Source: Oikopleura dioica (taxonomy: Eukaryota; Animalia; Chordata). From it: DNA of 64,000 nucleotides. The notes beneath the pieces are model-generated. The model saw only the letters and a list, made by a program, of their open reading frames with translations. It was not told the origin of the DNA and made no database searches. The stretch is from the NCBI GenBank assembly GCA_907165135.1, contig OU015566.1, forward strand, positions 8,184,001 to 8,248,000, written 5' to 3'. The translations under genes were made by a program, and so were the position numbers. Positions 12,698-20,883 of the stretch are shown piece after piece (position 1 is the stretch's first letter; every line of letters begins with the position of its first letter).

Positions 12698-14715
12698 TCA
12701 ACAGAAGGTGGCCATCATGTCCTCAAACGTGTCCTGTCGACGAATCTGCCTTTTAAAAGGTTTACTTATGCGTTTTCTTTCTTGTAAAAACTCAATGAAA
12801 AACAATGAACTCTTCCTGAATTCACAACCAGTTACAAGAAACTCAGCTCTTCGCGGGCGCATATTGTAGTTGGAGCTCAGTACGTGACAGTACGCTCCTA
12901 CGTCCCAAAGAATGACCAGCTGGTTCGTGTTAATTTCGCTAGGAAGCTGAGCCGTTTTGTTCAGAAAATCAGCAGATTCACAGACGGGTCCGACGACCTT
13001 GTAAATTTTAGCGTCATTCTTGTCGGTTTTTTTCGCCAATGTCACTTGATGATAAGCCTGATAAAGAGCAGGTCGAATGCATTCTGTCATTGACATGTTC
13101 GTTACTAGAATGTTATCATTCTTGACTCCAAGAGATCTCCCGATGCAGCAGGCTGTACTTCCAACCAGAGATCTTCCAGGCTCAAAGATGAGCGTGTAGT
13201 CTTCGCCGAAATTATTGAAGCATTCCGTATATTCCTTTCATTATTTAGTTAACGCCGGAACGCATATACGACCCATTTTTGGGTAATACGATTTTGCTAA
13301 TCAAAAAACCCATATTATATTTGATATACACATATAATATGACCACGATCCAGTTATATTTTTGTAGCTTAGAGTCCGGTTATAATATATAAACCCGGAT
13401 TTTTATTCTCTTTATTCCCAAATCGCGACAATATTGGGTTAAAAATGGTCAGAAATTTGCAAAAATGGCCATGCGTTCCGGGGTTAAGGATAAGTACCTG
13501 TGGTGTAGGATATCCTTGGGCTTTCTTTTCATAATTAATTGCTAAACCTCCACCAACATTCACTACTTTTCTAAATTATTAAGTTATCTTCACTCATCTG
13601 ACGTTGTTTAGTACATTATGTACTGGTTTTAGTACTAACAAGTGTTACCTGGATGGTTCAAGGAAATCAGCGATTGATTCCATAATGAGTTTCAAGGTGC
13701 TCGAACATTCTCTTCGTTCCGATTCTTTAATTTTAATGAGAAAAGGTTTTTTATGTTTACACTAGTTTTTATTCAGAAATTAAAGATTGGAAATCTTTAT
13801 TTGACCCGGCCCCTGATAGGTTCAAGATTATTGATGGTACTTCCCAAATGACAATGAATGCCAAGCAAGCTCATTTTCTCATCTTCTGAAATCTTCTTTG
13901 CGAGACCAGTTATGTCTTCTTGCAAAACCCCAAACTTACAGGCTTTCCCGGAAGCTGTAGTATTGTATTGATGCACTTTCGGGTCGATATTGGGATTAAT
14001 CCGAATGAGGACTTGACATCTTGTTTCCAGTGTTTTCGATAAAGCAGATATTCGTTCGTAATCGAACCAAGAATCAACATTAATGATGTGTCCTCGCTTT
14101 CAATTTAGGTTTCAGTTATCAGTTCTATGAATAATAAGCGAGAATTCATAAATATAGAAACTGTCTAACTTTCCTGAATAGCGGTTTGCACTTCACTTGA
14201 ACATTTACCATTCCCATTGAATATAACCTTATCTGACTTGTAATCAAGTTGCTCACTTGGCTTCAAACATAGCCTCTCAATATTAAAACAATTAGAAATC
14301 GGGAATTCCTCTTTGTTTCAACGTCAAACTAAGGATCACACACGAATAGAGATAGCTCGTAGCTTCATCAAAATTTAACTATATTTTCTAAAACACATGA
14401 ACTCTCAAGACGTGTCAATTTCCATTGGAAGCTTTCCTTGGCCAACTCAAGCTCGCCACCTGAAACTGTTGTCAAGCCGCTAACACCAGCTGCCTTTAAA
14501 ATTTTGATAATGGCCGGATTGAAGTTAGATTTCATCGAAAAATTCAGTTGAGTCTTGCATTTCAGTGCCTTCAGTCCTGACAAGTAATTCTCAACATTGA
14601 CAACGAGCGCTTTCTCGGAATAAACGAAGACAGGATCTTCTAAATCTATCTTCTCCGCAAAGGTCTCCACAGATAACTCATCGATATACAGATTTTCATG
14701 CTTGAAATCGATCAT
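12698..14715 (-). CDS. lysA: Diaminopimelate decarboxylase (LysA-like, PLP fold type III), 7 introns
   Basis: Spliced motifs FSMKSN (PLP Lys), TVSGGEL, IFNGNGK, LIRINPNID..HQY..TA...KFGV, GIHCHLGS, NVGGGL, IFEPGRSLV, IRPALYQAYH, VVGPVCESADFL, DVGAYCHVLSSNYNMRPRRAE, IRRQDTFEDM. CESAD and SNYNxRP match DAP decarboxylase rather than ornithine decarboxylase. Confidence 0.9.
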
Positions 14716-15010: not shown

Positions 15011-18000
15011 TTACTTTTTGTAGTCAATTTGTTCGGGCAATCCCTTATCCCAACCTTCAGGGATGTTGTGGCAGGTAGGGATTAGCCCGTAGTTGACAGT
15101 TGCACCAGCGTTGACGTACGGCAGCTTGCAGGCTAAAAATTGGATAAAATTTGATGATAAAAAGAGTTTTTTTACCTCGTGAACACTCGTTGATGAATCG
15201 GGAGAGGCACGGTCCTGTTTCTTTAGACGAGTTACTAACCGCGCTAAACCAGTCTTTGTACAAGCGCAGCGTATATCGGTCGATGTCTCTGTCAGTAATG
15301 CTCCAGAGCAAGGCCATTACTGACATAGACCCTGAGTCCAAGACCCTGGATTGATTAATTAGTATTAGCAATATATTATATATTTCAAACTTACTTTGTC
15401 ACTGCACCCCTCGGTTCAGTTCGACCATGATCGCGGAGTCTGCCGGAAGCACAGCCGATAAGGTGCATGGTGCTTTTTACACCTTTTCTGATCACACGTC
15501 CCCAGCCGCCAACGCAGTCGGAGCCGCTTCCATGCCCAGCAAAGACGTAGAGGTCGAATTTATTGAGTTTCTCAATCAACTCGGATGAATTCGGCATGAC
15601 GGACGCGTAACCGTTCCATTGCTTAACGCTCCTGAAGAAGTTTCCAACTGTCGCGGCCGAACTCGCGAGGTTGACCTGGTTGTCTACGACGTAGAGTAGA
15701 TTGGAGATGTCCATAGACCGTTTGCTCGCTGGTTGTCGAAGGAGGTACTCCGCATGTCTTACTGAGAGCATCCTAGAAATAAGCTATGGCAAAGCTTCAA
15801 AGCAACAATTTCGTACCTTGACATTCGAATTCCCTGACAAATGGGCATCCGTTCCATGGCGATCGATTGAACCACTCGTCCGAGGATGAGATATGTAGCG
15901 GTTGTCCGCTGATATTCCAATTCTTGAAAGACGTGGTTCTTTGCCAGACGATCGAGGTCGAGTTTAGTCACTCCAACGAGTCCAGCGACATTCGTCTTGC
16001 CGAGAGTGTTCAAATGAGACCAAGCCCGAATCGCATGGCTCAAAAAGTCGGCGTGAAGAGAGTTTTTGGGCTTGGGAACTGCATTGGTCCAAGTGATGCT
16101 TTTGGAGAATGTGAATAGAGCAAGAGCCGGACCAAGAACATCTAAAAAGAATATTTATTAAAGCCAAAGAAAAGATATTTTACCTGGGAGAACAGACAGC
16201 ACTAAATCCTTACAGTACTTTTCTCGTTCATCGCGCACCTTCCACCATTTGGTAGCGTTTTTGACATCTTTGCCAAGCTCTTCAGAGATCTTGTCGCACA
16301 TGTCGCGCATTCGCAGAGCCTCCTTGGCAAATGCATGACCATCGAATCCGATCGAAATACACTTCCCGTTGGGCTCCAAACGAGTGACGAGCGCGAGGCA
16401 ATTTTCGTATGTGCAGGATAGTGTCTTCGAAACATCTGGAATCAAGCTCACCAAGACGGCGTTATCATTCAGTTCCTGTCGCAGAAAAGGAAAGTCAATC
16501 CTGATATTCTCCGACAGATCTTCTGCTTGGATGAAGTTTTCTTTCGGAACTGAGCTGACATTGTTGGACATACGAGTATGAGCGCAGTACTGCGTGTCAA
16601 GAACTGCTCCAACGCCGTTAACATCAATGTGAAGCGCGGCTAGCTTTGATGAATTGCTCAAGACCATCGTGCTTTTCTGTGCGACTTGTTCCTGGCGCAA
16701 AATCTGGCCTATGCGAAGATTGTAGATCGCTCTGATGGTCTCCATGTCGCTGTTCTCCTTGGCGGTCGCGAGAGCTTCATCCAGAACGGCCTCTTCTGAG
16801 ATCAGCTGAGGCGAATCGCCTGCTCCAGTATGAGTACTGAAGATCGTGTTGATCTCAGACTCGATCGGAGAGACTGGTCGTGAACCGAAATTCTGGAGAC
16901 GAACACCCTCCGTCTTATCTTTTTGGCTCGTTTTGATGGGAGACAGATCTGGAATATCACCCATCGGTCCGACTCTCGCTTCTTCTTCAGGATCTTCAAA
17001 AATTGTGGCCCCGGCTCGATCTCCATCAGCGGCTTCTACTTTCATTCGACGAGCTGTAGCTCTCGTAGTCCGAGTTGTTCGAGTGGCCGAAACGGGAGTT
17101 CGAGGCTTATATTCAGCGTCGTTGATTTCTTTCTTGATTTTTGCGCTCTTTGGAGTTGCCAATGATATCGCCGCGTCGTCATTGAAAATTCGAAGCTTCT
17201 CTTTCTTCATTCTCTGTAGCTTCACATTGACCGGTTTCATCGGAGTAATCGCTGGAGTTTGATCGCCAGTTGTTTTCACTCTACCCCGTCGAGCGGGCGT
17301 CTTCACATCGCTGGTGATGACCATTTTTTGAAACGGTGCGGTTAGCTCAAGATTTTCCTTGTTCGCGTCGAAGGTTCTATTGTAAATGACGATTGCCACT
17401 TGCAATTTCGCGAATCGGCCGCACTTCTTTGGATTGACTTTCTCGGAGTTTCGGACAGGCTCGAGAGCATTTTTGACGTACTCAACAGCGTCAGATGGTC
17501 TATCGAGTTCCGTCGCGCGAAGAACGATTACGTATGCAAGCTCCAGGAGTAGCTGCGATAGTTGATGACCAGCGATAGCGATCTCTTTAAAGAGGAACAG
17601 GCCAGCGTTGACAGCTCGAGTAGGATCTGGATGAACACGGAACAAAGTTGTAAGTGCAATAACATAGTTCCGTGCAACATCGAGATCAAGCTTGCCAATT
17701 TTAGGAAGAACTGGAAGTTGAAATGTGAAGGCTTTTGTTGTTTCCGTTGTTGTTTTCTTCTTTATTTTCTTTGCCATCGGCGAGTCAGGGGTGAAACCGA
17801 AGAACTCTTCCTTGACTTTCGCAGTAGGCAAATGAGAGTTTGTTTGATCGACTTGGGAAGAATTTCTTCGGGGCGGGTCAAGTGAGATCGCCTGTGCTTT
17901 TGCTTGAGGATTGACTTCGCGCATAAATGGGTTGTCTTCGTTGATATCGAAGACTTTTAAAAGCGCTGGAACTTCGTCTTTCCACTTGCGCGTTTGACCT

Positions 18001-20883
18001 TCAAGCTCCAGTGCTCGTATTTGAAGTGTCTTCCCCATTATGTTGGCAGTCTGCAATCCCCAAATATCGGATAAAACAAGCAGCTCGTTGGAAAACATTC
18101 TCGCCTCGATCGACATGCCTCGTTTGATGAGATCATCGATGAAGTCGACACTTATCCAGATGGTTTTATCAAGCGCCCGCAGGGTCGCAATGATTTCTTT
18201 TCCAATTTTTTGGACTTTCATTGAACCCTCGGCCTTCGCCGAAGAAGCGAAGATCGTTTTGTAGAATTGCCGATCGCATGCACTCGACAGGAAAGTGATG
18301 ATGAGTTGAATGGCATAACGAAGGCCGCTTGTTTGATTCGCAGTTATCATCGAGCCCACATGACCAAAGGCCTTGTCATGATAATCTGACCAGCCGGAAG
18401 ATCCAGAGAGAGAGGTTTCTAACATGATTTGGGTGATGGACTCATCTTTCCAACCAATGGAGCTCTTTTTGGTCTCTGGGATGCCATCCTGGAACATCAT
18501 ATAACCAAAAGCAAGATGTTTCTTATCTTTCGAGGTCATATGGCAAACATTTGCTCGTTTCAGGGTCTTATGAATATCGTCGTCGTATTCGGGCTGGGTA
18601 GAGAGATGAGAATGCCGTCGCGCAACCCAAATTGACGAACCCAAGTCCATCACAAGATCACCGAGAAGCTCACTCACAGAAGCGTAAACTTTTGTCATCG
18701 GATAATACCAGTCGACGAGGGCAGTAAGCAGGCCTTTCAGGATCGTATTCCCAGCTTCTCGTTTTCCAAGAATCAAAAGAAGTTGCGCCGCAATGTAGTA
18801 CGTGTTGACATAGTTGCATACTTGCGACACAGAAGAAGTCTTTTTGAATTCTGTTTTGACCTTGATCTTGGATAATTTTTCAATGTCGAGTGAAGGGGGC
18901 TTCGAAGTGACTTTTTCCATTTTCTTGCTCCACGCGCCTTGAAGATCTCGTTGCCAAGTGGACAGGATCTTCCAGACGGTCGTCAGTTCGTCATTCTCAT
19001 CTCCGCCGGATCCGCTCATCGACGCAAGTTTTTTCGTCTCCTTCGGGAAGAATTCTTGCAATTGAAAAATGACGAGCTTGAGTAGGTCTTGATCTTCTTC
19101 CGTAAGTTTCTTGACGTCTCCGAACTCAAGAAGGGTATCGACGATTAGCACAACGGGCTCAGTTTTCTGCGGGATGCCATTCTCGCTCAGCGTGCTGATT
19201 AATATGCTCAAGAATCGGGCGCGTGATTCTTTCTCTACTTCGAACATATCGAAGAGCGAATTTTCGGAACAACGACATCGTTGATAAGGCTGAGAAAAAG
19301 TTGAGTGAGAAATAACTTTATGTAGACGATGTCCATTTTTGATAGTTGGCGGTTCTTAGGAAGATCGATTTCCATCTCTCTGAAGATTCTCACGCTGTTC
19401 GAGTTTTTCCAGCTGCAAAGATTGTTCGTTTCGCAAGTAATGGCGAGCTCGTTGATTGTCAATTCGATGAGATTCCAATGCTCCAGATTTGTGAAGTTAT
19501 CATCGTCTCTGGAAATCGAGTAGACGTACTTGAAAGAGCCTTCGAGATTTTTGAGCCCGGTCTCGACGATCTTGCGCTGCTTCGTTTTATCAAGATCGTT
19601 TCGTTTAGCGATCGTCTGGAGCACTCGAAGAAAGCTGTAGACTGAGAAGGCAGCATATTTGTGAGGGTGTTTGAATCTAGAACCGGTGAATCTACTCAAA
19701 GCTTCTGCCATGTGGCCTATCGATTCGTTGAGCGGAATCAGAACAGTCTCGAGAGCGAGGAGTACATTCGAGTCTTTTTCGGGCAGTGTGACGAGGTTTT
19801 GGCAGATATTGTGACAGATTTGCGCGAAGCCGTAGATGATCTCCTGGATGTCGTTTTCGACGATACCGCCAATAAGGCCATAAGGCGTGATGAACTTCCG
19901 AGTGAGATCTAAAATTTATACTTGAGAAATAATTTTTACTGGAGAAACTTACATTTGCTCATATATTTTATCAGTCGGGCCATGCAGACGAACTCGTGCT
20001 TTCTCCAGTTCTTTCCATTTGGAAAGCGGTTGAAGATGTCTTGCTTTAATGCGCTCATGAACGCTTTCAATTCTTTGTAAGTTTCTCGGATCGGCGATCC
20101 CAGCGCTTTCTTGTCGTCGAAGTCCATCATCTTTTTGTCGAGCGCTGGCACTTTGAATTTCTCGTCGATGAACTGTAGAAATTCATTTATGAGGCGGAGG
20201 CCGAGCCCAGGGACGCTTGATTGTTGGATTATGTCTTCGCGGAAGTCGTTGTAGAGCCGGCGACACTGCTGGTGAGTCGCCAACTCCCAGGTGTGGAAGA
20301 ACGCGCGCAAAAACTGAAAAATATGTTATTGAGATGATAGCTATCTAAGCGACCTTTCTACGAAGGTCAAAACACGGGCGGTAACGAACCCCCGACACCC
20401 GCGAGAAACCGGTAGATTTTATATTCTGATTGCTTACCCGTTTCGATTTTCCCCAACGCTCGAGCTTCAGCCACGCTTTTCGCCCGTCAATCCAAAGGTC
20501 ATCATCCAGCGTCATCATCAGAGTTGTGTGAGCCGCTGTGCTGTAAAGCTCCCACAGGTCCGTCTGTAAGCGAGTGCTGATGGCTGGAATGGAACTCGCA
20601 TATTTGGGAATGTTGGTAACCGTCAGATAGAGTTCCATGAGGTTATTAACGACTGAAGAGAGTTTTTTGTAGTCGACTGGGTTCTGCTTCTTTGCCGTTT
20701 TCGTCACGTAGTTGAACTCCATCTTAAAATTGCTATCAAACTATATTCTTGATCGTCAACATTCAACTAGAACTCTTTTACGAGTCTGCTCTAAGCTATC
20801 GTGATTCTTGATCTTACCTTGAAGGCCGCGGAAACGTTGCCAGCAGCGACCAGCTTCTGGTACTGAGCTTGGTCGTGGTCCAT
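15011..20883 (-). CDS. ESPL1: Separase (separin, peptidase C50)
   Basis: C-terminal catalytic motifs LYVFAGHGSG and LIGCASG, then ALLWSITDRDIDRY and CKLPYVNAGATVNYGL. Long helical N-terminal region includes the 1029-aa ORF 16158-19247. First exon MDHDQAQYQKLVAAGNVSAAFK (ATG 20883) splices GT-AG to MEFNY. Stop TAA 15011-15013. Confidence 0.93.

Follow-up and report, generated by a model that had tools for sequence, protein, structure and literature searches.

Lysine is, according to the textbooks, an amino acid that animals cannot make. A gene resembling lysA, whose product diaminopimelate decarboxylase (DAPDC) carries out the final step of lysine synthesis in bacteria and plants, thus raises several questions when met in a chordate genome: whether it belongs to the animal at all, whether it encodes the enzyme that its motifs suggest, and whether it was inherited or borrowed. 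The gene in question lies in a stretch of 64,000 nucleotides from Oikopleura dioica (NCBI GenBank assembly GCA_907165135.1, contig OU015566.1, positions 8,184,001 to 8,248,000 of the forward strand), here called the window, to which all positions refer. It is a split gene on the minus strand at 12698-14715, with its ATG at 14715, its stop at 12698-12700 and stop-free pieces in three frames. Modelled with seven exons and six introns, it encodes 415 amino acids in an intact frame (Table 1), and we put at about 0.7 the probability that it is the O. dioica orthologue of LysA, a functional, nuclear-encoded meso-diaminopimelate (meso-DAP) decarboxylase that was inherited vertically.

Assignment to the LysA family

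Family scans were run exon by exon, and the TIGR01048 (lysA) equivalog cut-off of 297.9 bits applies to a whole protein. The domain pair of the fold-type III pyridoxal phosphate (PLP) decarboxylases was found in the exons, PF02784 (the PLP-binding barrel) on exon 1, below the cut-off by itself, and on exon 3 (48.9 bits), and PF00278 (the C-terminal sheet) on exon 6 (57.4 bits). Among the NCBIfam models, TIGR01048 was the top model in all four exon pieces that scored, at 40.2, 73.1, 11.3 and 126.5 bits. In the same scan of exon pieces no ornithine decarboxylase (ODC) model matched, speA reached 27.6 bits on exon 3 only (against 73.1 for lysA) and gave nothing on exon 6, and the DokD model lay far below lysA on every piece. 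A grouping with ODC or arginine decarboxylases (ADC), which had been set beforehand as the test of the assignment, did not appear, lysA being the best model and the ODC models silent. The orthologous pieces of a metagenome contig described below (L093) gave the same top model, at 148.2 and 123.5 bits over 352 of about 415 residues.

Comparison of exon 6 with solved structures pointed the same way. The best match was the Arabidopsis DAPDC LYSA2 (6n2f, E = 7e-26, 94 bits), and 17 of the 18 PDB matches were named DAPDC, the exception being one D-ornithine/D-lysine decarboxylase (DOKDC) at E = 5e-4. A literature search on DOKDC specificity found none.

The sequence-only reading of this DNA had claimed that the DAPDC catalytic motifs are kept, and this was upheld, as the PLP lysine, HxHxGS, GGG, EPGR, IRPxLY, CES, GAY and SNYN could all be aligned. 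The window motifs FSMKSN, HCHLGS, NVGGGL, FEPGRS and DVGAYC align with animal and bacterial LysA, the PLP lysine of exon 1 falling on the K of the Y-S-x-K-A-N motif of animal LysA. The roles of these motifs in LysA (Schiff-base lysine, PLP binding, and a Cys-Glu-Ser contributed by the partner subunit) have been described (PMC12599289), and the EPGR arginine is said to steer the preference for meso-DAP (bioRxiv 10.1101/2020.10.01.322594). The substrate-selecting residues, namely the EPGR arginine, the IRPALY tyrosine, GPVCESAD and the SNYN tyrosine, are kept in the window and in its two larvacean-like counterparts L093 and L004. Judged by its sequence, the gene is O. dioica LysA-type DAPDC of the fold-type III PLP decarboxylase family, and neither ODC nor ADC.

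Conservation and expression in larvaceans

The same lysA gene was recovered from four or five independent larvacean-like sequence sources. Over exons 5-7, comparison with a Tara contig (L001) of 95% nucleotide identity gave a ratio of nonsynonymous to synonymous substitution rates (dN/dS) of 0.08. The metagenome contig L093 is more distant; all seven exons, comprising 412 whole codons with three more split by introns, align with it free of gaps, and 334 of the 412 residues are identical (81%), at proportions of nonsynonymous and synonymous differences of 0.11 (pN) and 0.78 (pS), the latter indicating saturated silent sites. On exon 1 the protein identity is 76%, and exons 1-3 form one open frame in L093 (1305-1943). 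By this comparison, introns 1 and 2 vary in presence between O. dioica lineages, being present in the window and absent from L093. A larvacean-like metagenome orthologue (L004; ENA ERZ27290921, contig k119_1686837) is 57% identical on exon 6; its frame is uninterrupted where the window has introns 3, 4 and 5, at nearly equal length, and its own introns lie elsewhere, at least one of them being apparently GA-AG.

RNA of the window's own lineage was sought, and no listed run matched at more than 95%: three bulk runs were of a diverged lineage and a single-cell run gave zero reads. The poly-A reads filed under the same species label agree to only 85-93%, and they cover parts of exons 3, 4, 5 and 6. 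Twenty of the 23 listed differences fall at third codon positions, as do all 16 in exons 3 and 6. Strong purifying selection thus acts on lysA in several larvacean lineages, and the gene is transcribed and spliced in a sister lineage of the window's O. dioica.

LysA in other animals and in bacteria

A search with exon 6, covering 1.84 billion representatives, returned metagenomic Oikopleura-like fragments first and then full-length proteins at about 50% identity; the top bacterial match (P0003) was 51% identical over exon 6. By cluster names and a profile search, LysA was found on chromosome-scale contigs of sturgeons, paddlefish, Branchiostoma, two hemichordates, Lingula, many molluscs and Owenia, and these other animal proteins score 395-400 bits on TIGR01048, above the lysA cut-off. 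The suspicion voiced in the sequence-only reading, that LysA-like genes may exist in other marine invertebrates, was thus confirmed in many of them and extended to sturgeons, which weakens the claim to novelty. A vertebrate lysA is seen in Huso huso (L008, CM072674.1), where it lies on a chromosome of 41 Mb, is interrupted by three GT-AG introns and scores 400 bits on TIGR01048.

Copies labelled as bdelloid rotifer or sponge sit on shorter contigs. The Ephydatia (sponge) copy (L009) has no introns and falls among algal and bacterial sequences; it was left out of the animal evidence. The Rotaria sequences (P0216, P0011) cluster on short branches with metagenome entries called as intact genes. 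The animal status of these copies is uncertain.

Among 185,579 prokaryotic species genomes, the closest to sturgeon LysA was that of Poribacteria at 48%, all others reaching at most 41%. Poribacteria are sponge symbionts, and their LysA (L012; tree rows P0228, P0240 and P0275) is nested among animal and red-algal sequences, which hints at transfer between domains.

Animal LysA genes are present in databases but hardly discussed. Choanoflagellates carry DAP-pathway genes, with orthologues in sponges and cnidarians (PMC7971027), and our literature search found no paper coupling Oikopleura with diaminopimelate.

Origin of the Oikopleura gene

Intron maps were drawn by exact spliced translation for Branchiostoma, Ptychodera, Huso, Owenia and Mactra. 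Six lysA intron positions are common to at least two phyla, and an intron-bearing lysA would therefore predate the bilaterian split. Intron 3 of the window (phase 2, alignment column 241) falls at the same column and phase as an intron in Branchiostoma (aa 227), Ptychodera (aa 229) and Mactra (aa 229), within a gap-free stretch; the chance expectation of such a match, given that six introns and six conserved positions are spread over about 1,260 possible sites, is about 0.03. The sequence-only reading had left two origins open, horizontal transfer and patchy ancient retention. Because intron 3 matches an amphioxus, hemichordate and bivalve intron, ancient retention is favoured over a new transfer, which becomes the less attractive of the two. 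There is fair support for a lysA with introns in the bilaterian ancestor that was lost in most animal lineages and, equally, for its having been kept in amphioxus, hemichordates, molluscs, annelids, brachiopods, sturgeons and larvaceans.

Several observations weigh against a vertically inherited, functional DAPDC. Only one of the six Oikopleura introns stands at a shared position. The maximum-likelihood (ML) tree, into which exons 1, 3 and 6 were entered as separate rows, sets the larvaceans on a long branch beside bdelloid rotifers and outside the animal-rich clade (96/95 support), a clade which also contains red algae and Poribacteria. The lysA scores, summed over pieces, come to about 251 bits for the window and about 272 bits for the two large L093 pieces, below the whole-protein cut-off. 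Two positions that are invariant in a ten-sequence reference alignment are changed in all larvaceans, the Ser before KFG to Cys and the Arg of K-D-R-x-L (after CES) to Ala. Finally, the RNA support comes from the diverged lineage and not from the Okinawa lineage, and expression is low, at 6-15 reads per sampled run.

The position in the tree would be expected if a larvacean ancestor had acquired the gene independently, by horizontal transfer from a bacterium or another eukaryote, and introns had been gained afterwards, in which case it would not be orthologous to other animal LysA. That Oikopleura gains introns readily, as seen from introns 1 and 2 missing in L093 and the differing positions in L004, fits such a course as well. 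We nevertheless consider it unlikely, since it leaves to coincidence an intron 3 at the exact position and phase of the amphioxus, hemichordate and bivalve intron. Moreover, closest to the larvaceans in the tree stand animal sequences, those of rotifers, likewise on long branches; an approximately unbiased (AU) test with the larvaceans moved into the animal-rich clade did not reject that placement (p = 0.249); and the bacterial genomes offer no close donor by the identities measured on the sturgeon protein. Vertical retention with long-branch effects would explain both the intron match and the tree, and is the reading that these data favour.

The low summed scores, well under those of other animal LysA, the fast evolution and the two replaced residues could instead reflect a LysA-derived enzyme whose job has changed, for example to D-ornithine/D-lysine or another diamino acid, and which does not make lysine from DAP. 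Animals are without the upstream DAP pathway, and a diatom LysA has been reported to be substrate-promiscuous, both of which would suit this explanation. Yet the meso-DAP-directing EPGR arginine is kept, as are IRPxLY and CES, and the DokD scores are far lower than those of lysA throughout; we hold a changed job to be improbable, more so than an independent transfer. That the locus is bacterial contamination, an assembly artefact or a dead pseudogene has very little left to recommend it. In its favour are the mostly bacterial membership of the family and a public annotation limited to a 274-residue fragment, but the gene has six spliceosomal introns, lies between animal genes on a 14.5-Mb chromosome, recurs in the independent larvacean-like sources and has an open frame under the selection noted above. 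As far as sequence data reach, this explanation is already refuted, and the earlier statement that the gene is no contaminant holds on the strength of host-type introns, adjacency to separase on that chromosome, purifying selection and transcription in the sister lineage.

Predicted function

The protein is probably cytosolic, because it is without an N-terminal extension. By analogy with its family, the enzyme would form a PLP Schiff base with the D-centre of meso-DAP, release CO2 and yield L-lysine. More speculatively, LysA together with DapF would form a terminal two-step module, from LL-DAP to meso-DAP to lysine. As no upstream gene of the DAP pathway is known from Oikopleura, such a module would have to draw its DAP from the peptidoglycan of ingested or resident bacteria. 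It is conceivable, though we rate it as doubtful, that a DapF-LysA pair dating from the first animals persists in many aquatic animals that eat bacteria or filter-feed, among them chordates, and converts digested cell-wall DAP to lysine. If that were true, such animals would not depend strictly on their diet for lysine.

Gene structure and genomic neighbourhood

Four of the six introns are non-canonical, three being GA-AG and one GG-AG (Table 1). The GA-AG introns announced in the sequence-only reading were thus borne out, and its count of seven introns is corrected here to six. All three GA-AG introns (14252-14436, 14097-14173 and 12750-12815) open with AG/GAA(A/G)(G/A).

Junctions 2/3, 3/4 and 4/5 are placed by colinearity, conservation and RNA, and junctions 1/2, 5/6 and 6/7 by colinearity and conservation alone. 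In the RNA of the diverged lineage, a loose end at 14098 gives ...TAIE/RGH across junction 2/3, matching the window's ...TAIQ/RGH; junction 3/4 is present (loose end at 13714); and a loose end at 13655 spans junction 4/5 as ...EPGRKVVNVGGG. The acceptor of intron 1 at 14252 was picked from three in-frame AGs by colinearity, and longer starts of exon 2 at 14260 or 14275 were dropped on colinearity with L093 and L004. The counterpart of intron 3 in L093 is GC-AG. For intron 6, the L093 frame stays open in the GA-AG register and in no other. An alternative last intron of 48 nt, GT-AG (12781-12828; 421 aa), was dropped, as a stop follows in L093, conservation begins only at ...AGGCAG/ATT, and the GA-AG intron restores the family spacing. 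Intron 5 harbours an element of 239 nt (13249-13487) with 17-nt terminal inverted repeats starting TTAA, which resembles a miniature inverted-repeat transposable element and is single-copy within the window; L001 has 27 nt in its place.

Table 1. Features of the lysA locus, in window coordinates; gene parts are listed in the direction of transcription.
Feature	Position	Strand	Description
Exon 1	14437..14715	-	93 codons; ATG at 14715; PLP-binding lysine in FSMKSN; ends ...GGELELAK; colinear with L093; TIGR01048 positions 6-90, E = 1.5e-10
Intron 1	14252..14436	-	185 nt; GA-AG; donor AAG/GAAAGC; phase 0; not in L093, which has an open frame of equal length
Exon 2	14174..14251	-	26 codons; NGNGK motif; colinear with L093 and L004
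Intron 2	14097..14173	-	77 nt; GA-AG; donor CAG/GAAAGT; phase 0; not in L093
Exon 3	13813..14096	-	94 codons + 2 nt; RINP, VH.Y and HCHLGS motifs; PF02784 E = 7e-13; TIGR01048 73 bits
Intron 3	13712..13812	-	101 nt; GG-AG; phase 2; inside an Arg codon 11 residues after HLG
Exon 4	13649..13711	-	1 + 60 + 2 nt; spanned by diverged-lineage reads that continue into exon 5; aligns colinearly with L093 and with L004, whose frame is unbroken here
Intron 4	13571..13648	-	78 nt; GT-AG; phase 2
Exon 5	13498..13570	-	1 + 72 nt; GGG phosphate-binding motif; 23/24 residues as in L093; TIGR01048 positions 230-248
Intron 5	13235..13497	-	263 nt; GT-AG; phase 0; contains the 239-nt element
Exon 6	12816..13234	-	139 codons + 2 nt; EPGR, IRPALY, GPVCESAD, GAY and SNYN motifs; PF00278 E = 1.8e-15; TIGR01048 126.5 bits
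Intron 6	12750..12815	-	66 nt; GA-AG; donor CAG/GAAGAG; phase 2; placed by conservation in window, L093 and L001 and by LV-IRR family spacing
Exon 7	12698..12749	-	1 + 48 nt + stop; ends ...QIRRQDTFEDMMATFC*; 14/16 residues as in L093; zero differences from L001
Separase, 3' part	15011..19247	-	upstream same-strand neighbour of lysA; Peptidase_C50

The public annotation of O. dioica OKI2018_I69 has only a 274-aa product at this locus, corresponding to window 14217-12698 (L092 12667-14186) and carrying PF00278 alone. It begins at 14217 with an ATG that lies within exon 2 but out of frame, and it leaves out the N-terminal third with the PLP lysine. The public model was probably truncated because introns 1 and 2 are GA-AG, and the exon model given here corrects it.

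The neighbouring gene is 100% identical to O. dioica OKI2018_I69.chr1.g2176 and has a Peptidase_C50 domain, which identifies it as separase. Its stop at 15011 leaves a gap of 295 nt to the lysA ATG, in agreement with the distance of about 300 bp stated in the sequence-only reading. OKI2018_I69 has three separase genes, the chr1 copy in the window and two in the X-specific region that are 83% and 79% identical to it.

Significance

Oikopleura joins, as a fast-evolving chordate, the little-noticed animals that retain the enzyme with which bacteria and plants complete lysine synthesis. With fair support, the shared intron suggests that the presence of lysA in animal genomes goes back at least to the bilaterian ancestor and that the gene was not repeatedly borrowed. 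The use of DAP by animals becomes testable in a small laboratory chordate.

Comparison with known systems

Bacterial LysA, to which the TIGR01048 equivalog refers, shares with the Oikopleura protein its fold, its motifs and its predicted chemistry. In contrast to the Oikopleura gene, however, the bacterial genes are intronless and stand in a complete pathway, and their products do not exceed about 40% identity to the animal type, as measured on the sturgeon protein. The chloroplast DAPDCs of plants (Arabidopsis LYSA1/2; 6n2a, 6n2f) show the same subfamily traits as the Oikopleura protein, for example V/T replacing the Asp before SGxE, but they carry transit peptides and perform the closing step of a DAP pathway that is complete in the plastid.

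Whiteflies and mealybugs have horizontally acquired lysA/dapF genes (table in PMC4943190), and there, as proposed for Oikopleura, bacteria start the pathway and a terminal lysine enzyme encoded by the animal finishes it. In the insects the transfers are recent and lineage-specific, the donors belong to identifiable bacterial groups and the genes serve obligate endosymbionts, whereas the Oikopleura gene is without a close bacterial relative. Nuclear dapF and lysA have already been published for Trichoplax sp. H2 (PMC6879607), and DAPDC is listed as a transfer candidate in corals (PMC4878875); in both, as in Oikopleura, an animal nuclear genome holds no more than the final one or two DAP-pathway steps. 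A bacterial or algal origin is assigned to the genes in those papers, whereas the intron that Oikopleura shares with other bilaterians argues for a long vertical history. In Trichoplax a rickettsial endosymbiont could supply the DAP, while for Oikopleura no such partner is known.

The other animal LysA genes compared are those of Branchiostoma, Ptychodera, Glandiceps, bivalves, gastropods, a chiton, Owenia, Lingula, sturgeons and paddlefish. The Oikopleura protein is set apart from these by an identity of about 40-50%, a long branch, five of six introns at other positions, four non-canonical introns and fewer summed lysA bits. It has in common with them the same domain pair and catalytic motifs, a nuclear, intron-bearing gene, and one intron at exactly the same position and in the same phase.

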